NCBI RefSeq assembly: GCF_000143415.4
Contig: NW_003314264.1
Span: 3,771,229 to 3,835,228, forward strand
From: Selaginella moellendorffii
Lineage: Eukaryota; Plantae; Lycopodiophyta
DNA: 64,000 nt
Direction: 5' to 3'
Part shown: piece by piece, positions 33,002 to 56,479 of the stretch
Layout of the letters: every line of letters begins with the position of its first letter
How positions within the stretch are numbered: position 1 is the stretch's first letter
The notes under the pieces: model-generated
What the model saw: only the letters and a program-made list of their open reading frames with translations
What the model was told of the DNA's origin: nothing
Database searches by the model: none
Position numbers and translations under genes: made by a program

Positions 33002-36000
33002 TGTGAGTGCTTGGAATATGGAAAGGGAATATAGAAATGTGTATATTAATTAACCCAAAAACCCTAGTTTATATACAGGAGCGAGTGGTCTAGATTGAAA
33101 CCAATCCGACAGCTACCAAAATCCCACTACACTAATATTAGTATATGGCATCGTAACCGTACACTTGGCCCTCACATCACCCCCTCCTCTCGAAATAATG
33201 GAAGACCATCAGAGTTCTCTTGAAGATGGGCCGGGATCCAGAGGAACGTTAAGAGGAAGCATCGGTGGATCTGTAGGTGGTATTAACTCCTCATGATCCC
33301 TTTGTACGAAGCGTTTCAGCCGCTGCACATGCACAATCTCTGAAGGATTGGCTTGCTGAACATCATGCCGAACCTCATAAACTTGTGGTCCAACTTGCCG
33401 CAACACCTGATACGGTCCTTTCCATTGAGCAAAAAGCCCCTTAGATAAACCATGTACCGTAAGATGGGGAAAACGGATTAACACCAAATCATCCACTTTG
33501 TACTCCGCATGTGGACAATGATGGAAGTTGTAGCGCCGTTGTTGTCCCACTTGTACGCGGCCTAAGTGTTCGGCAGACTCTGCTCGGACAAGTGGAAGAA
33601 TGCTCGTCAAATACTAATCCCATGATCTAGCATCGGCAGCTCGTAGCAATCGCGAAGGTAAACCCAATTCCATTGGTAATATTGGATCATGACCATATAG
33701 GAGTTTATATGGTGAAGTACCAACAGAACTCTGCACCCTTATAACATATGCATACCGAAGAGACAACAAATAACCATCCCAATCCGAATGCTAAAAGTTC
33801 ACATACTTCACAATCATCCCTTTGAATGTCCGAACAAGCCATTCCACCAGACCATCTGATTGTGGATGATAAGCACTCGTGAAAGTGTGGCATATCCCCA
33901 ATCGAGACATCAAAACATGAAATGCCTCAACCATAAATGCGGGACTATTATCTAAAAGAATCCGCTCTGGACAAGAATGCTGGAACACCACTCGATTGAG
34001 GAGGAAGTATCCAACAGTAGTTGCAGAGGCGCTAGCAAGAGCACCAACTTCCACCCAACGAGTCAAGTAGTCAGAAGTAATAATAACATACTCATTGCCA
34101 ACAATCGACTGTGGAAAAGGTCCTATAAGATCAAACGCCACTAACTCAAACGGACGGGAAATCGCAATTGACTCCAACTGTCCTTCCGCAGCACGAGGGG
34201 GAGTATTACAAGCTTGGCACCAAACGCAGCTACGCACATACTGGATAATATCACATCGCATCTCTGGCCAATAGAAAGACCTGTGCAGCTTCTCGGTGAC
34301 ACGACGGTGTCTTATATGCCCACCTAAAATAGGAGAATCATGGTAGGCATGGAGAAACCGCGGAATAAACACCGAAGGCACCACTAGCCGTAAATGATCA
34401 TCAGGATCCGTCCCCACAAAATAAAGAAGGCCATCTTCAAGGCGATATTGAGAATGTAAATGCCGGAAAGGCAAGTCATCAGCAAGTGATGCAAGATTTT
34501 CAAACCCATCTCAAAGCCTTCGAATCCACGGCTCAATCTTTTGAGCCTCGCGAACCTCATCAAGAGAAGGTAGATCTTGCTCTGCACCCTGTGGACACTA
34601 AACGTCAAGGACAGCAACCGCCGACAGCACAGAATCCTCATCTAGAAAATCCACAAATGCTGGAACAATAGGTTCGTCAGAAACATGAGAAGTGAGTGGA
34701 GAAGGAAGAGGAGCTCGAGAAAGGGCATCAGCATCAGCCATAGAACTCCTTGGATGATGAACAACATCAAAATCATATATCTGAAGCTTCAAAGCCCATC
34801 GAGCCATACGACCAACCAGGTTCTTCCGCTTCAATAATGAAGTAACAGCAGCATGGTCACCTTCAAGTAACGTCTGAGAACCATGTAGATATGCATGAAG
34901 TTTCTCGAAACCCCAGATTGCTGCTAAACACTCCTTCTCTGTCGTGGAGTAGTTCATCTCTGCTGGTTGTAATGTACAGCTTATGTATGCAATGGGATGG
35001 CACTGACCAGGCACACTCGAGCTCTCTTGCATCAACACACCTCCAAGACCAATGTCAGAAGCATCCACGCGCAAAATAAAAGGTCGAGTGTAGTCAGGAT
35101 ATGCCAAAACCAGAAGAGTCGTCAATAGCTCTTTGAGATCCACGAACGCCCGCTCACAATCTGGAGACCAGATGAAAGATGATGTTGATGACTTCAGCAA
35201 CGCTTGCAATGGTGTAATGCGATTAGAAAGATGATCCACAAAACGACCGACATATTGCACCTTACCCAAAAAGCGCTACACATCATTCACACACTTCGGA
35301 GTAGGGAAATTTAGAACAGCCCAAGTTGGTCAGGATCAACTTGCAAACCCTCACGAGAAATACAGTACCTAAGATAAGTTGTGTCCTTGGACCCAAACAC
35401 ACACTTTGACAGCTTCAGCTTCAAACCAACGTTGCGTAGCTGATCCAACACTTTACAAACATCACGAACGTGCTCCTCCCACGTCCCCTCCAAGTGGATC
35501 AAGACATCATCAATGAAGTCAGCAGTCACCTCCGGCATATCGCAAAGAACCTCATCCATCATCCGCTAGAAAGTTGCTGGAGCATTGTTCAAACCAAACG
35601 ACATCACCAAGAACTCATACAAACCAAATGGTGTACGAAAAGCAGTCTTAGGAATATCTTCTTCAGCCATTGGTACTTGCCAATACCCAGAAGCAAGATT
35701 TAGCTTGGTGAACCAACGACTTCGCCCCAGATGATCCAAGAGATCAGTAGTGTGAGGAAGAGGATACACATCTGGGATCGTCACTTCGTTTAACGGACGA
35801 TAGTCGATGCAGAAACGAATACTCCCATCAGACTTCGTCACAAGATGAGGTTCACATGCCCAAGGACTCCGTGACTTCCGAATAACACCCTTCTCCAGCA
35901 TTTCCTTGACGTTTGCTCGTAAAATCTTGATCTCCTTAGGTGACCGACAACGAACAGGAACCTTGATTGGACGAGCATCCCCGGTTGGAATCAGATGATG

Positions 36001-38001
36001 TGTGGCAATCTTGGCCCCAGACAATAGGTCAAATTCAAAGAGATCAGAATACTCCTTTATAAGCCAGTCAACTGATGCAACACAAAGATCGTCGGAGGGA
36101 TCGGAAAAGGGAAGAGTAGAACAAGATGGAAACACAGAAAGAAAATGTGGGGGAACAAAAGTAATGGAAGCAGAGGTAGAAGTAAAGGGACGAAGAGGTA
36201 TGGAAGTGAAAGGAATAGATGAAACATAAGGAAGTATGAGACAAGGGGGAGAAGCCTTAAAGTTACACTTGGCATGATTGCGCTGCAACCAATCCATACC
36301 AAGAATGAAGTCAAAAGCTTGACTCGGCACCACCCGCAACGACTGCAACTCAAGCTCGAGATCACCCACACGCACAACCAGGTCCACCTCATCCCGTGCA
36401 CATGCATGTGTATGGCCGTTGCCATAAAGAATGAAAACTGATTCCGCCGCACGACGCAAGTGTAGACGACAACGTGTGGCAACAGGTCGAGCAATAGAAG
36501 ATAAACTCGAACCTGTATCAACCAACATGGGGAGAATAATATAAGACCTTTTGTTATAAAAACGAGCTTGGAAAGTAAACACTGGATGAACTGGTGCCGA
36601 GTGAACCTCTTGATGATACTCCCGAAAGAAAGATGGAGGGGTCACTGATTTATTCGCGCAAGGTCCCTCTGTTACTCGCGCGACTCCTCGTTTCTCGGTG
36701 TCCAGACCTTCCACTGCAGCAGCACCCACGGGACGTTGCTAACGCCAAGGCCTCCACCCAGGAAATGGAGGTTGCCAATCCGGAAAACGACGGCAACGCC
36801 GATAAGTATGACAAACTTCATCACATGCCCAGCAGTGAACATCACGGCCACGACCACGTCCTCACGCTTGTCCTTGGACTCGAGCAGCAGCAGCATCAAC
36901 CTCCATTGGAACAGGACTATCACCCATAGGAAGTGGAGCGGAAGGACATGCAGCGAGAAGTGGAAGAGACGACGTCTCATAACGTTGTGCCAAGCAAAGA
37001 GCATCATCAAGGGTGGCAGGAGCAAGTGCATGCACAAGTCCAACAAGATCTTGACGAAGTGCTAGCCACAACATTCCTAGCTTGATCCGCTCCGACATAT
37101 TTGGCTCCACACGAAGCAAAAGACTTCGGAAACGAACGCCAAATTGCATCACCGACTCAGATGGCCCTTGGCGAAGACGATGCAATTGTTGGAAAGCATC
37201 ATCACAATCATCGGCATGTCCGAAGGCGCGTTTGAAGACGTCCGGGAGAACACTCCAATCCCCATGAGTGGCTGCACTCAAACCATTGTACCACTGCAAT
37301 GCCGTCTCTTGGAGACATGTGAGAAACTCATGCAACCGTCAAGCATCATCCCAAGAATGATATGTGACAATCATCGTAAAGTGATCGAACCAATGGTACA
37401 CATCATCCCCAGGATTTCCGTGAAAGAACTCCGGCCAAACGCGAGGATTGGCACCAAGAGCAGGAGGAGTTGTACCACGTGCCGTGAACACCGCCATCAA
37501 CTAAGTTTGGTTGTTCAATTGCAAGCGCATAGCATCAAGCAATTGTACCAATTGCTGCTCTAGAGTCAAAGGAGGAGATTGCTAATCTGCTATGAAGATG
37601 AACGAAAAAAAAAAAGTAAAAGAAGAGAAATGACAAAAAGCTAGAAGGAAATGGTAAATCTAGACAACACAAAAAGCTAAATCTAAACCAAAACCTTGAA
37701 AAGGAAGAACAAAAGAAAGGAAATGGAAAAAGCTAGATCTAGACGATGCAAAAGCTAAATCTAAACCAAAATCCCAAATCCAAGCACTCCTTAGGGATGA
37801 TCAAAGGTGCCCTTCACCTCCACCAATGTGAGTGCTTGGAATATGGAAAGGGAATACAGAAATGTGCATATTAATTAACCCAAAAACCTTAGTTTATATA
37901 TAGGAGCGAGTGGTCCAGATTGAAACCAATCCAACGGCTACTAAAATCCCACTACGCTAATATTAGTATACGGCATCGTAACCGTACACTTGGCCCTCAC
38001 A
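33002..38001 (-). mobile_element. Full-length but mutated non-chromovirus Ty3/gypsy LTR retrotransposon, 5.0 kb
   Basis: 175-bp LTRs TGTGAG..CTCACA at 33002-33176 and 37827-38001. TSD ATGT. PBS TGGTGGAGGTG at 37815-37825; PPT next to 33177. Order gag (36700-37500), protease VDTGS, RT FIDD, RNase H VDASD, integrase HHCC/DDE with GPY. No chromodomain; several stops and frameshifts. Confidence 0.96.
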
Positions 38002-38119: not shown

Positions 38120-39690
38120 TGTAGCACACCTTATCTCTCTCCCCTTAAACCAACTGGAAAAGGGGCAATTGCTTGATGAGAGCCCTTAGTGGCTATTTTA
38201 TCCCCATTTATCCCCTAAAGTTCCAAGGATCCACAGTGACAGTATATCCAAATCTCATCCCAAGATCACATGCACTACACTCACCCCCCCTTCAGAGATG
38301 TCAATGTCTTCATTAACTATTGACTAGCAACCCCTACTAAGCCAAGGGGAACCAGCATCTCCATTTCCGCACTCAATCTACCAATCCTTCTATTGTGTAA
38401 ACCAGCTATTCCATGTGAGGCAACTAGTCATCCACCTCCTTCCATTGTGTAGACCAGCTATTCCATGTGAGGCAACTAGTCATCCACCCGTACCGCAGTC
38501 CCACGGTGGATACCTTCGTCCGTGGATACTCCACACAAGAGGAAGAACATACGCATGGATGCCCCACACAAGAGGTGGTTCCCCTCCATTTCCGCACTCC
38601 ATTTCTGCACTCAATCTACCAATCCTTCTATTGTGTAAACCAGCTATTCCATGTGAGGCAACTAGTCATCCACCTCCTTCCATTGTGTAGACCAGCTATT
38701 CCATGTGAGGCAACTAGTCATCCACCCGTACCGCAGTCCCACGGTGGATACCTTCGTCCGTGGATACTCCACACAAGAGGAAGAACATACGCATGGATGC
38801 CCCACACAAGAGGTGGTTCCCCTCCATTTCCGCACTCAATCTACCAATCCTTCTATTGTGTACGCATGGATGCCCCACACAAGAGGTGGTTCCCCTCCAT
38901 TTCCGCACTCAATCTACCAATCTTTCTATTGTGTAGACCTCCATTTCCGCACTCAATCTACCAATCCTTCTATTGTGTAGACCTCCATTTCCGCACTCAA
39001 TCTACCAATCCTTCTATTGTGTAGACCAGCTATTCCATGTGAGGCAACTAGTCATCCACCTTCTTCCATTGTGTAGACCAGCTATTCCATGTGAGGCAAC
39101 TAATCATCCACCCGTACCGCAATCCCACCATTTCCGCACTCAATCTACCAATCCTTCTATTGTGTAGACCAGCTATTCCATGTGAGGCAACTAGTCATCC
39201 ACCTCCTTCCATTGTGTAGACGAGCTATTCCATGTGAGGCAACTAATCATCCACCCGTACTGCAGTCCCACGGTGGATACCTTCGTCCGTGGATACTCCA
39301 CACAAGAGGAAGAACATACGCATGGATGCCCCACACAAGAGGAAGAACATACGCATGGATGCCCAATACGTACGATTTCAAATTTAGGGGTAGGAATATA
39401 CCTTGCTCAAAGGTATACGTACGATTTCAAATTTAGGGGTAGGAATATACCTTGCTCAAAGGTATATTATATTTTTAAGTAGCCACTAATCAATAGAAAT
39501 CGAACCCGTGTCATTTCCTCTGATACCAACTGTAGTGCACTTTATCTCTCCCCTTAAACCAACTGGAAAAGGGGCAATTGCTTAATGAGAGAGCCCTTAG
39601 TGGCTATTTTATCCCCATTTATCCCCCAAGGTTCCAAGGATTCACAGTGACAGTATATCCAAATCTCATCCCATAATCACATACGCTACA
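38120..39690 (-). mobile_element. Non-autonomous LTR element (TRIM/LARD-like) with an internal higher-order tandem array
   Basis: ~160-bp LTRs TGTAG..CTACA at 38120-38279 and 39531-39690. TSD AAAAT on both sides. PBS TGGTATCAGAG (tRNA-iMet) at 39518-39528. PPT GGGGGGGTGAG at 38280-38290. No coding domains. Confidence 0.95.
38360..39465. repeat. Modular tandem repeat inside the TRIM
   Basis: Eight copies of 36-bp ACCAGCTATTCCATGTGAGGCAACTAGTCATCCACC interleaved with repeated ~41, ~16 and ~95-bp modules. Higher-order period ~238 bp. A 49-bp doublet at 39368-39465. Confidence 0.95.
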
Positions 39691-43325: not shown

Positions 43326-44960
43326 ATGGCTTCGCCAAGTTCTGGCTTGACGGTTGCCGTGGGGATCTCCGTCCTGGCTTTCAGCTTCGTCTCGGCGATC
43401 ATCGTGGTCGCGATTTATTGTCTCAAGAGGAGGTTCTCGCATAGATCAGAGCCGATCGGATTTATTTCGCTGGAACAAGGTAGGCACTCTTTTCCCTTTC
43501 TTTCTCCATCTAAGTAGTGGAATGTTTTTCACCAGTTGCTTGGAAGAAGGAAGCTAACAGCATTGATGTTCCAACGCAAGCACGCCCCTTCCAGCTCCTG
43601 GAAATCAAAGTTGCTACCGAGAGCTTTAGCAGGAAGCTTGGAGAAGGAGGATTTGGGCCAGTTTATCACGGGATTCTCCCTGACAGCCATGAAATCGCAG
43701 TGAAAGTCCAGTCCTATGATTCCAAGCAAGGAGCGAACGAGTTCTTCAACGAGGTAAGCCCTTTGAAGCACTGTTCTTTCTTTTGCTCTTGTTACAGTGG
43801 TATCACTCCAGGTCCAACTCCTGTCAAGAGCTCACCATCGTCACGTCGTCTCGCTGGTCGGCTACTGCCACGAAGCGAATTCTCGGATGCTAGTTTACGA
43901 GTATCTCTCTGGAGGAACGCTCGAAAGAAACCTTCACGGTAAGATAGTTTACTCGTCATGAATCGACTGCCATTGTTCTGGAACTCCAGATATCAGCTCG
44001 AAGACACTCTTCTCTTGGAAAACCAGGCTAAAAATCGCGCTTGATGCTGCCAAAGGTACGTTTTCGTGCTGTCGATGTTTTCGAGGAGCTCATTCACTCT
44101 TGCAGGGATCGAGTACCTGCACTGCGGCTGCAATCCTCCAATCATCCACCGAGACTTGAAGAGCGGCAACATCCTCTTGACGAGCGCAATGCAAGCCAAG
44201 GTTGCGGACTTTGGCCTCTCAAAGCTGGTGGAGGGAAGTCGCATCTTTACAGCAGTCAAGGGTACGTCAGGCTATGTCGATCCTGAGTATGTTCTTCATC
44301 TCTTCCCATGATCTATCTTTCTCTTTGCAATACTGATCATTTAATCGTGTTTTGGATGACACAGGTACTATGAAACTCAAGAGTTAACACAGAAGAGCGA
44401 TGTTTACAGCTTTGGGGTGGTGCTGCTGGAGATCATCTCCGGAAGAGAAGCTTTGATCGACACCCCCAAGCCTCGCAAACAGCTCAAACTCAGCGATTGG
44501 GTAACTAAGAATTTGTTCTTTCCTTCTTCCACTTTTTCCATCGCTATAGCCGAGTCGCACTTTCTTCCAGGCCAGGGGCTTCTTGCTGGAGCGGCGAATC
44601 CACAAGATCATAGACCCCATCTTCGACGCTGTCTATAACATCGAATCCATCTGGAAAACCGCGGAGCTCGCCATGTTTTGCGTGGAGCCTCGAGCTGTCC
44701 ACAGGCCTGCAATGCCGGAAGTTGTCCAAGAGCTAAAGCAAGCGCTGGACATCGAGGAAGGAAGGATCACTGTAGCAACGATCGAGGCCGCGACGCCCTT
44801 GGCTCCCGTCCAGGCCGCAAAACACCACCACGCGCGTTCCGAGCCGGTTTACTACCATCAAAACACTCGAAACTTCAGCTTTGGAACTTCCGAAGACGAA
44901 TCTTACAGCTTCTCGAATTTGCGAGAGGTGAAAACAACTGAAGGAGAAACAACAACTTAG
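43326..44960 (+). CDS. Receptor-like Ser/Thr kinase with N-terminal TM anchor and no ectodomain, multi-exon
   Basis: TM at residues ~7-33 followed by [34 protein letters not shown] and [13 protein letters not shown] are all intact. Confidence 0.9.
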
Positions 44961-45050
44961 CTCGTAACAGTCGCTGGAAGAGCGAAGACCCAAGACCCAG
45001 GACTGAGAGAATGAACTTAACTAGGACGAAGCAGCGTGAAAGGTCCGACG

Positions 45051-45251
45051 AAAGAAGATCAACATGTCACATAGTAAACGTAGCTCTCGACTGAACGATG
45101 AGATCAAAGGAAGGAAAAAAAAACCAGAGAACTTAGCTGCAAGTTCGAACGGAAGAAGATCAATAGCAAAAGTAGTGAACTTAGCTCTGGACTGAAAGAT
45201 CCGATCAAAGGAAGCAAAGAAAAAAAATAAACCAGAGCACTTAGCTGCAAG
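45051..45251. repeat. Diverged ~95-bp tandem duplication covering the gag-like ORF stop codon and 3' flank
   Basis: aagaagatcaa...tagctct.gactgaa.gat..gatcaaaggaag...aaccagag.acttagctgcaag occurs at ~45052-45143 and ~45153-45251. Confidence 0.75.
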
Positions 45252-46395
45252 AGGAGAATGGCAGTGGCGTGCTACACCATGGACACACCGTGGAAGGATC
45301 GGTCTCGAAGAAACTGGCCAGGCGCATGGTTGTCTGGAGGGAGATCTTATTGGAGGAGATCATGTGAGTCAGCACGTGACTCAGCTTCTTGTTCCAGAGG
45401 CCCTCCACGTAGGCGAGAACCACGTCCCACGTCGGCAGCCCCACGGCGATGGCGTCCAGGTAGACATCGAGGAATAGCTGATCGTAGTCGCGCAGTGGCA
45501 TGCCATAGTCCTGCTTCATCCCTTCCAGCCGCCGCAAGAGTAGCGATCGATCGCCGCGGCAGCTCCTCCAGTCGTCGTTGGGCATGAAGAATCTGACGAG
45601 CTCGGTCTTGAGCTCCTTCCAGCTCCGGATCCCTGGCGCCCCGGCGCGGCGCTCCGGCGTGAGATTGGGGGAATTCTTGGATCGCGGCGCCCCGCCATTG
45701 CGATCTTGGTGGGCGATCTTGGATGCTGGATCGTTCTTGTTGCATGGCGATGACGAGCCGGAGCCGACAATGCGCCACCACTTGTGCGCGGCGCCCGAGA
45801 GATGGAAGACCGCGCAGTCGATCTTTTCCTGCTCGCTCATCGATGGGCCGCAAATCTGGAAGAAACCGTCCATCTTGCTCACCCATTCCTCGATCGCGTC
45901 CGCGTCCCACTGCCCCTCGTAGACGGGGAGATCCACGCCCTTCCACCTGAAAACCTCTAGCCGCTGGTGATCGAGATCGGGATCCCAGGACGAACTGGAG
46001 AGGGAATCCGGCGATGCCGATCCTGGTGCCGGTGACAAGAATCCGCCCCAGCCATTCTCGTCCTCGTCGTCCGCGAATGGAAATTCCGGGATCACCAGAG
46101 GCGAGGATCGGGGGGAGGATCTGGGCGAGCTTTGGGGCTGGATCCTCCGCGGCGAAGGCGACGGCGACGGCTGCCGCGGCCGCTGCTCGATCGCGGGATT
46201 CTCCTCGTCGGAGCGCACGAAGAGAGGATTGGCGTGTTCTTGGGGCTGCTGCTGCTGCTGCTGCCGGGGCGGGATTGGAACGATCTTGACGGCGTAGTGG
46301 TGGCGAACGTCACTGATGCGCGAGCAGCAGCCGCCAAGATTCAATCCCAGGCCCATCCTGGCGTTGCGCCTCGAATCCACGAACGAAGGCGCCAT
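45241..46395 (-). CDS. Stand-alone retrotransposon gag (capsid)-domain protein, candidate domesticated gene
   Basis: Uninterrupted 384-aa ORF from a CCGCCATGGC start. Capsid-like motifs LPVYEG..DADAIEEWVSKMDGFF, EKIDCAVFHLSGAAHKWW, SWKELKTELVRFF, LEGMKQ...LRDYDQLF, YVEGL. No LTR, PBS or pol nearby. Confidence 0.8.
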   Translation of the reverse strand: MAPSFVDSRRNARMGLGLNLGGCCSRISDVRHHYAVKIVPIPPRQQQQQQPQEHANPLFVRSDEENPAIEQRPRQPSPSPSPRRIQPQSSPRSSPRSSPLVIPEFPFADDEDENGWGGFLSPAPGSASPDSLSSSSWDPDLDHQRLEVFRWKGVDLPVYEGQWDADAIEEWVSKMDGFFQICGPSMSEQEKIDCAVFHLSGAAHKWWRIVGSGSSSPCNKNDPASKIAHQDRNGGAPRSKNSPNLTPERRAGAPGIRSWKELKTELVRFFMPNDDWRSCRGDRSLLLRRLEGMKQDYGMPLRDYDQLFLDVYLDAIAVGLPTWDVVLAYVEGLWNKKLSHVLTHMISSNKISLQTTMRLASFFETDPSTVCPWCSTPLPFSSCS

Positions 46396-47039
46396 GGCGG
46401 GCCTGTAAAAGCCAGATTCTTTGCGCTCGCCGCTATTCATTGGCAAGAACACGAAGAACAAGGGCTCGCGCGGGGGAAAAGAAAACTCTGGGAAGAACAC
46501 TAGCCCTAAGGAAATTTGACTAGTCCCGAACGTTGACGTTGACTAACATACAGGAGCCTTGCATGGTCGATATGCTGCACGACTTGATCCACATGCAAAG
46601 AAGAAGACCGAAGTGCACCGAGTATAGAGCGTGGAATGAGCAAGATTCTCAAACAATTCACAACACACTTGCATTTTGCATCCATCAGTCTCATGCTTCA
46701 AAAAGGGGCACCACCAGATTATCCAAACAGAGATAGAAAGATAGTGAACGCCAGGTTTCACTGCTGCATAGTTTCAGGTCCTTGTTTGCTCTATGAAAGC
46801 CACCATTTAGCAGACAAATGTGTCTTCTCCTCAAGCACTCTTTGTCCAGCTTGCCAGAGCCTTAGAGAACAACGCAACGAAAACTCATGAAGAACAAGAC
46901 AAGCAAAAGAAAACTAGGCATATCCTCCATGCTGTTCCAACAACACCGACTGAACTGTGTTTTCCCCTAATTATTTCAGTTTCACCACATATGGTCTTTA
47001 CATTATTTGTGGTAGATATCTCTACAGTGAAGATATGAT

Positions 47040-47420
47040 TATCGAGGTGCCATCATTGTTCTTTCTGGATGAAGCATTGATCAGTTGGACCAGCAAGCAG
47101 CAAACTTCTATAGCTCTCTCATCAACAAAAGTTGAGTACACTAAAGCCACCTTGGCCAGTGTGGTTACAAGAAACAAATCAAAAGTCAAGCTCCACCTCT
47201 AGTGAAGAGTGACAAGCCATCTAACTATGGAATCTGAGGTATCACTCAGATAAAACACTTTGATATCAAGGTACATTCATTCAAGAGCAGGTACGCAAGA
47301 AGATTCCCTGGAGCATATCTCTACTAAGTGCAACCAAAACATTGACTCATTCAAGTTACATAGAGTTCATTTCTATTGCAAAAAATATAAATTCCTAATG
47401 ACCTTCCACTCAGGGAGGAT
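47040..47420 (+). mobile_element. Decayed Ty1/copia RNase H C-terminal fragment
   Basis: LISWTSKQQTSIALSSTKVEY, then a frameshifted IKHFDIK..FIQEQV and a purine tract near 47412. Confidence 0.75.
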
Positions 47421-47972: not shown

Positions 47973-48429
47973 AGCTGCATAGATGACGCCACAAGTCTGT
48001 TCTATGCAGATAGCCATGATCACCGCTTGTGCCGACCACCCGTTTGCATGACACGGCAAGGTTGAACTTCACGAGCCTCCCAGAGCAGGACATGTTCTCT
48101 TGGGATGCCCTCCTAGCCCCACTGCATTTGGACGTGGTGTCAACACTAATATCGGGTGGTACCCAATATCAGTGTCAGTATCGGTGGTTTCCTCCACCAG
48201 GCCAAGAGACTCTCTGACAGAGTGCTGGATCGAAGTGTGATGCTGTGGACATCGGCCTCCAGGTCTGCATTCCTGGGCTGGTGTCTGTGGCTCCCAAGGC
48301 TGAAAAGCTAGTGTTGTGTGAGATGGCCCTGCCTGCCCCAAGAAGCATCACCCCTCCTGGCTCCAGTTTTTTCCCCATTCTACAACCAAGAAGCCAGTGT
48401 TTGTGACTAATGTTGGTTGGGCAATGAAC
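47973..48429 (+). repeat. Copy 1 of a ~430-bp direct repeat (copy 2 at 53530-53942) containing a PPR remnant
   Basis: Shared blocks: gatagccatgatcac, gagcaggacatgttctcttgggatgccctcctagccccactgca, ggtggtttcctccaccaggccaagagactctctgacagagtgctggat. Confidence 0.9.
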
Positions 48430-53529: not shown

Positions 53530-53942
53530 GGCTGCGTAGATGATGCCACAAGGCTGTTCGATGCAATGCAGATAGCCATGATCACTGGGCCAAGCTCTGT
53601 TTGCACGACACGGCAAGGGTGACGAGCCTCCCGGAGCAGGACATGTTCTCTTGGGATGCCCTCCTAGCCCCACTGCAGGCGGTGTCGACACTGATATTGG
53701 GACCCGATATCAGTGTCAGTGGTGGTTTCCTCCACCAGGCCAAGAGACTCTCTGACAGAGTGCTGGATTGAAGCGTGACGCTGTGGACGTTGGCCTCCAG
53801 GTCTGCATTCCTGGGCTGGTGTCTGCGGCGCCCAAGGCTGAAAAGCTAGTGCTGTGTGAGATGCATCACCCCTCCTGGGTCCATTCTAAAACCAGGAAGC
53901 AAGTTTTGTTTGTGACTGATGTTGGTGACCATGGGCAATGAA
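53530..53942 (+). repeat. Copy 2 of the ~430-bp direct repeat
   Basis: Aligns to 47973-48429 with several indels. Preceded by a PPR motif remnant LFDGMPERSLVSWSAML. Confidence 0.9.
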
Positions 53943-54634: not shown

Positions 54635-56479
54635 TTAGGATTCTTCGCTTGTCATGAGCTCCAAGAAGGCCGCCATTTGCTGCCCGCCATCGCCGCCCAT
54701 CCTCTGGAGCTTCCAATTCCCTCCAATTCCCCCCTCTCCCCTGGCCTTCCTCGTGAGCCCCATCTCTTTCATCCGGCTCCTCACGAGCTCCCTATCCTCC
54801 ATCTTCCCAGCGGCCGCGTAGATGTTGGAGAGCACTATGTGCGAGGCGGCGCTCTGGGGATCTAGATCATGGAGCCGCTGCGCCGCCACCGCGGCATTCT
54901 CGACTGCCCGGTGGATCCGAAAAGAACCTAGCAACGATCCCCATGCCCTGGCGTCCGGCTCGAATGGCATGCTCTCTATCAGATCCATCGCTCGCCCAAG
55001 ATGTCCCAATCGCCCCAGGATGTCCATCATGAGGTTCCAGTGCTCCACCGCCGGCTGGATCCCGTGCTCCGCCGCCATGCCCGTGAAGTATCCCCAGCTC
55101 GCTTCGATCCGCCCAGCGTGATTGCATGCAACGAGCGCGTTCGTGAAGGAGATATGATCGTGCCCAATCCCCTCCACATCCATCCGGGCGAAGATCTCCA
55201 GCGCCAGATCGCCCCTGCCGCAGTGCGCGCACGCTGCCATGATCGCATTCCACGCCACCACATCCCTCTCCTCAATCAACTCGAAAGCCCTTGCCGCGCC
55301 CGCGAGGTTCCCACTCTGGGCATACGCCTGGATGAGCGCCGTGGCGGCGATGGCGTCCCTGTCTGGCATCGCGTAGAAGATGTGCTCCGCGCTGGGGAGA
55401 TCGCCATTCTCGGCGAATCCCATCAGCATCGCGTTCCACACGACGCGGTCCTTCTCGGGCACAGCCGCGAATAGAGCCCTAGCTTCTTCTAGATGCCCTA
55501 ATTGGGCATATGCTACAAGCATGGCCGTCCAAGATACCACTGTTCTTTGGGGCATAGAATCGAACACCCAACGTGCCGAGTCCACCTCGTTTGAGAGAAC
55601 GTACCCATGCAAGAGTACCGTCCACGTAATGACGTTCGCGTATGGCATTGAATCAAACACTGCTTTTGCTTCCCCCAGATGCCTCCTCGCGGCAAATAAC
55701 TGAAGAACACTTGTCCAAGAGACGATGTTCCTCTCGGGCATACATTCGTAGAGATGTTTGGTGTAATCGAGTTCTCCATGGCGTGACATCGCAGCGATCA
55801 TTGAGTTGTAGCTCACGAGGCTCCGGACAGGCATAGATTGGAAGAACGTTTTAGTATCGCGCAGATCCCCAGAGAGCGTAAAGCCCTGGAGCATCACGGT
55901 CCAGGAGACGACGTTCCTCTCGGGCATGGCATCGAACAGCGCCTTGGCGGGCGCGAATTGCCCGCCAGCGACGAACGCCTGGAGCATCGACGTCCAGGAG
56001 ACGATGTCGCGGACAATCATCTGATCGAAGATCCCTTTGGATCCCTCCAGGCAGGCGTTCTGGGTGTAGGCAGCGATCATCGCGTTCCAGGCGGGGGTGC
56101 TCCAGCCCGGCATCCGATCGAAGAGCCGCTTGGCGCTCTCGATATCCTTGTTCTGTGCGAGAGCGCCGATCATGGTCGTCCAGGAGAAGAGATTGGGGGC
56201 TTTGATCTCCCGGAACACCGCCAGCGCCTCGCCCGCGCTCTCGCACTTGCCATACATCTGCACAAGGAGATTGGCGAGGAAGCAGTCGTCGTGGAGCTCG
56301 CTGTGCCGGATCCGAGCGTGGACGCTCCTCCCCCGGTGGAGATCCTTGCAGTCGCCGCAGGATCTGATCAGCGCCGCGAAGAAGATCTGCGTAGATTCGC
56401 CGCTCGGCTTTGATGGAAGATCTTTGCCATCGCTCCTCTTCCTCGTCTCAAGCGCACCGCCGGCCCCAATCGCGGCCAT
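54635..56479 (-). CDS. PLS-class PPR protein with E1/E2, no DYW
   Basis: 614-aa intronless ORF. SS-type repeats, HWNLMMDILGRLG, MPFEPDARAWGSLL, VLSNIYAAAG. Confidence 0.93.
   Translation of the reverse strand: MAAIGAGGALETRKRSDGKDLPSKPSGESTQIFFAALIRSCGDCKDLHRGRSVHARIRHSELHDDCFLANLLVQMYGKCESAGEALAVFREIKAPNLFSWTTMIGALAQNKDIESAKRLFDRMPGWSTPAWNAMIAAYTQNACLEGSKGIFDQMIVRDIVSWTSMLQAFVAGGQFAPAKALFDAMPERNVVSWTVMLQGFTLSGDLRDTKTFFQSMPVRSLVSYNSMIAAMSRHGELDYTKHLYECMPERNIVSWTSVLQLFAARRHLGEAKAVFDSMPYANVITWTVLLHGYVLSNEVDSARWVFDSMPQRTVVSWTAMLVAYAQLGHLEEARALFAAVPEKDRVVWNAMLMGFAENGDLPSAEHIFYAMPDRDAIAATALIQAYAQSGNLAGAARAFELIEERDVVAWNAIMAACAHCGRGDLALEIFARMDVEGIGHDHISFTNALVACNHAGRIEASWGYFTGMAAEHGIQPAVEHWNLMMDILGRLGHLGRAMDLIESMPFEPDARAWGSLLGSFRIHRAVENAAVAAQRLHDLDPQSAASHIVLSNIYAAAGKMEDRELVRSRMKEMGLTRKARGEGGIGGNWKLQRMGGDGGQQMAAFLELMTSEES

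Follow-up and report, generated by a model that had tools for sequence, protein, structure and literature searches.

We analyzed a 64-kb stretch of the Selaginella moellendorffii genome (64,000 nucleotides of contig NW_003314264.1, hereafter the window, to which all positions refer) and identified on its minus strand a lone open reading frame (ORF) derived from the gag gene of a Ty3/gypsy retrotransposon, which we call the gag ORF. It occupies positions 45241-46395, is intact and intronless, and encodes 384 amino acids (aa) followed by a TAA stop, as an earlier sequence-only reading of this DNA had proposed. Modeling showed that the predicted product is a Ty3/gypsy-type capsid with a complete two-lobed fold. 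Three independent lines (allelic divergence, the observed-to-expected ratio of CpG dinucleotides [CpG o/e] and codon-position composition) indicated that the gag ORF evolves like host genes. We consider it probable, with considerable room for doubt, that the gag ORF is a single-copy gene restricted to this lineage, derived from a Ty3/gypsy gag and maintained by the host. We therefore present the locus as a credible candidate for co-option on indirect evidence, not as a demonstrated domestication.

Pfam found a single family in the gag ORF, Retrotrans_gag (PF03732, clan CL0523), with an E-value of 9.2e-7 and a score of 29.5 bits, above the curated cut-off of 24.1 bits. The match fell into two stretches divided by an insertion, the best of which covered aa 253-334. 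The sequence-only reading had recognized a Ty3/gypsy capsid pattern in the C-terminal ~230 aa, and the motifs DLPVYEGQ..EEW, AVFHLSGAAHKWW, SWKELKTELVRFF, MKQDYGMPLRDYDQLF and YVEGL were indeed all present in the same order as in ordinary Ty3/gypsy gags. When the gag ORF was aligned with seven further proteins, of which five fit gag families in Pfam, its C-terminal 250 aa paralleled ordinary gags across both capsid lobes. The core motif order (LPxYxG, W..F, L.G.A..WW, W..F...F.P, Q....Y..F, GL) was kept in this alignment, and residues W171, F179 and W206-W207 were invariant. Helices 1-3 of the N-lobe (aa 153-212; 45760-45939, minus strand), delimited from the alignment and the structural model, carry LPxYxG..W..F and L.G.A..WW and are the sole part of the gag ORF that reached other gags in single-sequence searches. 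N-lobe helix 4 and the predicted five-helix C-lobe (aa 255-366; 45298-45633, minus strand) follow, with YVEGL and a Q..LRDY..F motif that resembles the major homology region.

The fold was predicted with AlphaFold2 (AF2) from eight sequences only. The model had a mean predicted local distance difference test (pLDDT) score of 75, with 102 residues at pLDDT >=90, and contained nine core helices, four in the N-lobe and five in the C-lobe, with the insertion disordered. Modeling the full-length protein added disorder only, at aa 1-136 and in the C-terminal tail. When the model was compared with the PDB by Foldseek, the best 50 matches were all retroelement or retroviral capsids, among them dArc1, Arc, dArc2, copia, PNMA2 and the C-lobe of PEG10, with probabilities of 0.82-1.00 at weak E-values, and also HIV CA; dArc1 (6s7y) was the top match with a probability of 1.0. 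The C-lobe matched the C-terminal domain of PEG10 (7lga) with a TMt of 0.73 and a root-mean-square deviation of 3.3 A. A fold search of BFVD returned mostly retroviral Gag and caulimovirid coat proteins among its top matches, together with one metavirus ORF1. Single-sequence phmmer of the gag ORF against PDB chains gave no meaningful match, and capsids were reached only by profile and fold search; the profile made from the alignment matched dArc2 at 5.5e-14 and also dArc1, mammalian Arc and Ty3 capsid chains. Two of the checks that the earlier reading had suggested, a hidden Markov model match to Retrotrans_gag and a predicted capsid fold, thus came out in its favor.

We found that the gag ORF corresponds to an existing unnamed gene model on scaffold GL377568.1 (GCA_000143415.2), whose 384-aa protein it matches exactly. 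A database look-up returned this exact protein only via the genome assembly. In the published literature, nothing was retrieved under the locus tag and nothing specific on gag domestication in Selaginella. The annotated start at 46395 lies in the context gccATGg, in agreement with the strong Kozak start described earlier, and a second in-frame ATG in a weaker context was detected 15 codons upstream, at 46440.

A second copy of the gag gene was present on scaffold GL377582.1 (L001:10001-11161), 99% identical and with the same neighbors in the same order. The order common to both scaffolds is PPR genes, gag, a convergent kinase gene, RNase PH, a CBS-domain gene and GRAS, and from this we take the GL377582.1 copy to be the allele on the other assembled haplotype. 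Both alleles are open and encode 384 aa (GL377568.1) and 386 aa (GL377582.1). For the GL377582.1 allele, the GenBank gene model SELMODRAFT_412422 (249 aa) contains an out-of-frame splice after residue 207 by which the capsid is lost; given that the 386-aa ORF is unbroken on this scaffold, we treated the model as a mis-prediction, and it is probably a gene-model error.

To the extent that two haplotypes allow, the allelic comparison indicated constraint on the frame. The gag alleles differed by 11 substitutions in 1155 bp (0.95%) relative to 2.3% in 1156 bp of adjacent non-coding DNA (Fisher P=0.013), a 2.4-fold reduction; the coding sequence of RNase PH stood at 0.93%. Only one indel separated the alleles, a 6-bp in-frame change in the poly-Q tract, where the indel density of the flanks predicted ~10 (Poisson P=5e-4). 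Six of the changes were synonymous and five non-synonymous, giving a ratio of non-synonymous to synonymous divergence (pN/pS) of 0.25 (binomial P=0.024), not near 1, the value that the sequence-only reading had named as counting against it. The pS of 0.022 was about equal to the 2.3% divergence of the flanks. The pN/pS values of neighboring host genes were 0.13 for RNase PH, 0.10 for PPR and 0.39 for GRAS. The 129 bp immediately 5' of the gag ATG (46396-46524, minus strand) were identical between the haplotypes, and the next 360 bp beyond 46524 carried 13 substitutions and 6 indels. The identical segment is likely a 5' untranslated region or core promoter, on statistics that are marginal.

The base composition of the gag ORF was in line with the allelic data. 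Its CpG o/e was 1.08, within the 0.73-1.20 of the host genes, as had been noted from the sequence, whereas a gypsy element in the window (33002-38001), the upstream flank and other intergenic DNA ranged over 0.43-0.78. The gypsy element itself had a value of 0.69 and its ORFs 0.69-0.78. GC content at third codon positions (GC3) was 0.79 in the gag ORF, 0.54-0.77 in six intronless host genes and 0.80 in a second lone gag of the same species, described below; the gypsy element had five ORFs, one of them its gag, and every one lay at 0.37-0.41. Together, the CpG o/e of 1.08 and the GC3 of 0.79 imply that the gag ORF has long existed as a coding frame free of methylation.

We searched the vicinity of the gag ORF for the remaining parts of a retroelement. 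Neither self-BLAST nor repeat searches (seeds of 10-12 nt) detected a pair of long terminal repeats (LTRs) or terminal inverted repeats (TIRs) bracketing the ORF. No tRNA-iMet primer-binding site (PBS) occurred within 5 kb at <=2 mismatches, and the total for the window did not exceed chance, the pattern searched being that of tRNA-iMet only. No pol domain was found beside the gag ORF, which is followed downstream by the convergent kinase gene. The earlier statement that LTRs, a PBS, protease and reverse transcriptase (RT) are missing around the ORF was borne out by these searches. In both haplotypes, the host protein kinase gene (43326-44960, plus strand; 423 aa, with introns and a Pkinase domain) and the gag ORF are arranged tail-to-tail, also as described before, with the two stops 280 bp apart. 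These 280 bp are all that separates the gag ORF from the kinase stop and leave no space for pol or a 3' LTR. The shared 3' spacer (44961-45240) harbors a tandem duplication of ~101-108 bp (duplication region 44953-45251), within which the last gag codons and the gag stop fall. A recurring CTTAGCT in this duplication gives the kinase its TAG on the plus strand and the gag ORF its TAA on the minus strand. The 3' ends of the kinase and gag transcripts probably overlap.

The surroundings were not free of transposable elements (TEs). CpG-poor TE debris starts ~130 bp upstream of the gag ATG. A short ORF on the plus strand at 46957-47202 encodes a peptide (ISWTSKQQTSIALSSTKVEY...) that may resemble the conserved Ty1/copia RNase H motif and for which Pfam gave no match; the 1.5 kb around it is AT-rich with a CpG o/e of 0.43. 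The gypsy element at 33002-38001 (minus strand) lies 7 kb from the gag ORF with three host genes between them. It has its own 175-bp LTRs (94.3% identical), contains gag, protease-RT, RNase H and integrase in broken frames, and is the nearest source of pol to the gag ORF. We interpreted it as a polymorphic insertion or deletion because it is missing in the other haplotype (L001). Its gag was considered as the source of the gag ORF and rejected, as the similarity was not significant. Adjoining this element is a tandem array (38359-39363) whose ~238-bp units contain nested 73-bp repeats and which is mostly missing in the other haplotype. Two direct repeats (47974-48428 and 53531-53942; 79% identical overall, 94% over a core of 143 nt) are located 5.5 kb apart in both haplotypes, and the ORFs between them had no Pfam match; these may be an ancient pair of LTRs or else a segmental repeat. 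The PPR gene at 54635-56479 (minus strand) had an allelic pS of 0.098, 3-4 times that of its neighbors (0.02-0.03), at a pN/pS of 0.10. Gene conversion among clustered PPR paralogues or deeper coalescence may account for this high pS.

An exhaustive phmmer search with the gag ORF, run on 1.84 billion cluster representatives at E<=1e-3, returned nine proteins: the allele, one tandem-repeat artefact and seven weak gag-like matches. The seven weak matches were 30-39% identical over only ~aa 100-220, and six of them fit gag families in Pfam; the seventh (P0009) had no Pfam match and yet aligned with the others. The artefact (P0002), which was the second-best match, was discarded, being a 53-aa tandem repeat that matched 25 residues. 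Word-index protein searches with the full protein, the gag domain alone or a profile that included the second lone gag recovered only the allele or that second gag. No paralogous TE family of the gag ORF was found among annotated proteins. The window contains one copy and the predicted proteins otherwise contain only the allele, a count that covers the DNA of the window and the predicted proteins. Near-identical copies inside LTR-bounded elements, the outcome named in advance as refuting, were accordingly absent from the window and from the predicted proteins.

The second lone gag (P0004; XP_024537088.1, LOC112348553) is a 303-aa intronless ORF of S. moellendorffii with Retrotrans_gag and Ty3_capsid matches, located between laccase and RPL18 genes (L003:10001-10912, GL377595.1). 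No LTR, pol or zinc knuckle was detected at its locus and no relatives in the databases. It resembles the gag ORF in its S/P-rich N-terminus, its high GC3, its CpG o/e of 0.91 and its position between host genes. Unlike the gag ORF, it has no loop insertion and its N-terminus is coiled-coil-like, and the two proteins are 24% identical. We rejected it as a close paralogue. It probably arose independently, in a separate event, since it is no closer to the gag ORF than are angiosperm TE gags.

Outside the conserved lobes, three parts of the predicted protein were distinctive. The N-terminal ~134 aa (45994-46395, minus strand) are of low complexity and predicted to be disordered, with a poly-Q tract at 46246-46263, SP/RS repeats and an acidic patch. 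These features had been described correctly, but the label 'host-like' is unsupported: this region resembles the low-complexity N-termini that are also found in ordinary plant gags, such as that of XP_024537088.1. It had zero relatives in the databases searched, including the exhaustive local phmmer search, which covered the N-terminus with no length limit. An in-frame ATG at 46356, downstream of the 46395 start, was confirmed. The lipidation (myristoylation) signal MGLGLNLGGCC that it was proposed to create was unsupported, since initiation would be needed at a codon that lies behind one strong and one weaker ATG.

The insertion inside the capsid that the sequence-only reading had noticed was placed by the alignment and the AF2 model between N-lobe helices 3 and 4. 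It comprises ~42 aa (aa 213-254; 45634-45759, minus strand), directly follows the WW motif, is basic (pI 10.3) and Ser/Pro-rich, is predicted to be disordered and is missing in every aligned gag. A further 7-residue insertion relative to ordinary gags was seen early in the C-lobe. We considered whether the 126-bp capsid insertion could be an unspliced intron. The seven in-frame GT..AG pairs were all 59-66% GC with poor donors; an intron is unlikely, and we think the insertion is translated because these candidates are so GC-rich and poorly supplied with donors. The C-terminal tail of 18 aa (45244-45297, minus strand), modeled with low confidence, does contain the reported CPWC-x8-C. It could not be upheld as a modified zinc knuckle since it has only three Cys and no His and is not of the CCHC type, and a regular-expression scan found no CCHC knuckle (C-x2-C-x4-H-x4-C) downstream of the capsid.

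On the reading that we favor, a Ty3/gypsy ancestor would have shed the LTRs together with protease, RT, integrase and the zinc knuckle of its nucleocapsid, and its gag would have been kept by S. moellendorffii as an ordinary protein-coding gene. The protein would then act through self-association of its capsid lobes, and its most likely role, comparable to that of Arc, PNMA or Gagr, would be that of a cytoplasmic oligomeric scaffold or a shell-like assembly. The basic loop and the RS/SP-rich N-terminus are likely interaction surfaces that might replace the lost zinc knuckle in binding nucleic acid or partners. That the protein forms capsids or carries RNA is improbable in our view. We would likewise give little credence to the fullest version of this proposal, in which the gag ORF would be a first case of capsid-gene domestication beyond the seed plants, still shell-forming and RNA-binding through the basic loop and N-terminus, and one of at least two independent gag exaptations in Selaginella together with XP_024537088.1.

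Several observations weigh against host maintenance. No orthologue was found among ~15 billion predicted proteins, where the presence of other Selaginella genomes is uncertain, and cross-species synteny of the kind used by Wang and Han (PMC8321522) could not be established because of this. The selection test rests on 11 substitutions, and the deficits of substitutions and indels may partly reflect slower mutation of GC-rich, unmethylated DNA relative to AT-rich, methylated flanks. Foldseek E-values were weak (best 1.3e-3) and global TM-scores low, which we attribute to the flexible placement of the lobes and the loop; the ranking of capsids was unambiguous. Finally, self-assembly and any cellular role are inference. 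The domestication proposed by the sequence-only reading is partly supported, by the lone capsid ORF, its place between host genes in both haplotypes, its host-like composition and the allelic constraint; an orthologue in another species was not found in the protein searches.

A serious rival reading is a neutral relic, that is, a gypsy element that inserted before the haplotypes split and lost its LTRs and pol by deletion, leaving a functionless gag that has not yet been disabled. Such a relic would need no orthologue, would suit the TE debris directly upstream (CpG o/e 0.43), and could be open by chance as the haplotypes are ~1-2% apart; the selection test is small (11 changes, P=0.024), and lone gag models are frequent by-products of annotation. 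We nevertheless regard it as unlikely, though it deserves more weight than the other alternatives. The GC3 and CpG o/e of the gag ORF (0.79 and 1.08) are unlike those of every ORF of the TE in the window (0.37-0.41 and 0.69-0.78). Identity to any gag, annotated S. moellendorffii gags included, is low (30-39% over ~aa 100-220), and unselected divergence that large would have broken the frame. A relic also fits poorly with one in-frame indel instead of ~10 and with a pN four times below a pS that equals the flank divergence. In addition, unconstrained LTR-element sequence is quickly deleted in Selaginella (PMC5750206). In S. lepidophylla, gypsy elements have been described as rapidly gained and deleted, and TE blocks as specific to one haplotype (PMC5750206); against this background, an intact gag that stands alone in a collinear block of genes is worth noting.

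A function of another sort, in which a host-kept gag decoy co-assembles with or caps gypsy particles and poisons them in the style of Fv1, enJS56A1 or Ty1 p22, appears improbable to us. A complete predicted capsid fold lacking nucleocapsid and pol is what such a decoy should look like, and its restriction to one species would be expected of fast-turnover defence genes. Targets would be at hand, as gypsy elements are active and polymorphic in the genome, including the element 7 kb away that is missing in the other haplotype (PMC5750206). The haplotypes, however, show purifying and not diversifying selection. Dominant-negative gags usually stay near their targets in sequence, whereas the gag ORF is not significantly similar to the neighboring gypsy gag and has low identity to all gags found. 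We judge a decoy less likely than a scaffold because of this very low similarity. A mobile non-autonomous element, either of the TR-GAG type or consisting of a piece of gag picked up by a different transposon, is largely refuted here and strikes us as very improbable. LTR elements of <4 kb with a single gag ORF do exist in angiosperms (PMC4350172), but around the gag ORF neither terminal repeats, direct or inverted, were detected with seeds of 10-12 nt nor a tRNA-iMet PBS. From its stop to that of the kinase there are only 280 bp, taken up by a local tandem duplication; the gag ORF is a single copy in the window without close protein relatives, and its site is shared by the two haplotypes.

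Host maintenance of the gag ORF would place it beside known co-opted gags. For animals, the co-option of gag is well documented; for plants, four gag co-options are on record, all angiosperm, the first report dating from 2021 (Wang and Han, PMC8321522). That study relied on cross-family synteny or a phylogeny following that of the hosts, plus selection, and does not mention Selaginella or lycophytes (PMC8321522). Crtg8 and Crtg11 resemble the gag ORF in being plant Ty3/gypsy gags that stand alone, without LTRs or pol, under purifying selection (PMC8321522). They differ in being defined across at least two plant families, while no orthologue of the gag ORF was detected outside S. moellendorffii. 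Its selection signal is of the kind sought by Wang and Han, if weak, and its synteny is conserved between two haplotypes only. With the Crtg genes the gag ORF shares only the Pfam family and no further detectable similarity, and its host is a lycophyte.

Non-autonomous and restriction systems are more distant. TR-GAG elements also have gag as their sole ORF, together with terminal repeats, a PBS, a polypurine tract and many copies (PMC4350172), none of which were found for the gag ORF. Fv1, enJS56A1 and Ty1 p22 are likewise gag- or capsid-only proteins that exist apart from a functional element; these proteins target closely related capsids, and the gag ORF is too diverged from every gag found.

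The nearest structural counterparts were the animal proteins Arc, dArc1, dArc2, PNMA and PEG10, with which the gag ORF shares a predicted two-lobed, all-helical capsid (best fold matches 6s7y, 7r23, 6tap, 8uyo and 7lga). Like mammalian Arc, it has no CCHC knuckle. It differs from the animal proteins in its independent origin (12-20% identity), in having no Arc-type N-terminal coiled coil and in its 42-aa N-lobe loop insertion. Drosophila Gagr is another lone gag-derived host gene of LTR-retrotransposon origin (PMC7231272, PMC8956099); it is conserved across Drosophila species with documented expression (PMC7231272, PMC8956099), whereas the gag ORF is known from genome sequence. The locus thus adds a candidate to the known co-opted gags and not a new kind of system. 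If the reading is true, this lycophyte case would show that capsids were recruited in plants outside the seed plants. At 384 aa and without introns, the gag gene would be a small and tractable case for the capsid fold in a plant cell, in a species whose genome is ~100 Mb and whose expression atlas is published. The two assembled haplotypes of S. moellendorffii further provide an internal test of constraint, which could be run on the whole genome to tell relics from candidates among lone TE-derived ORFs.

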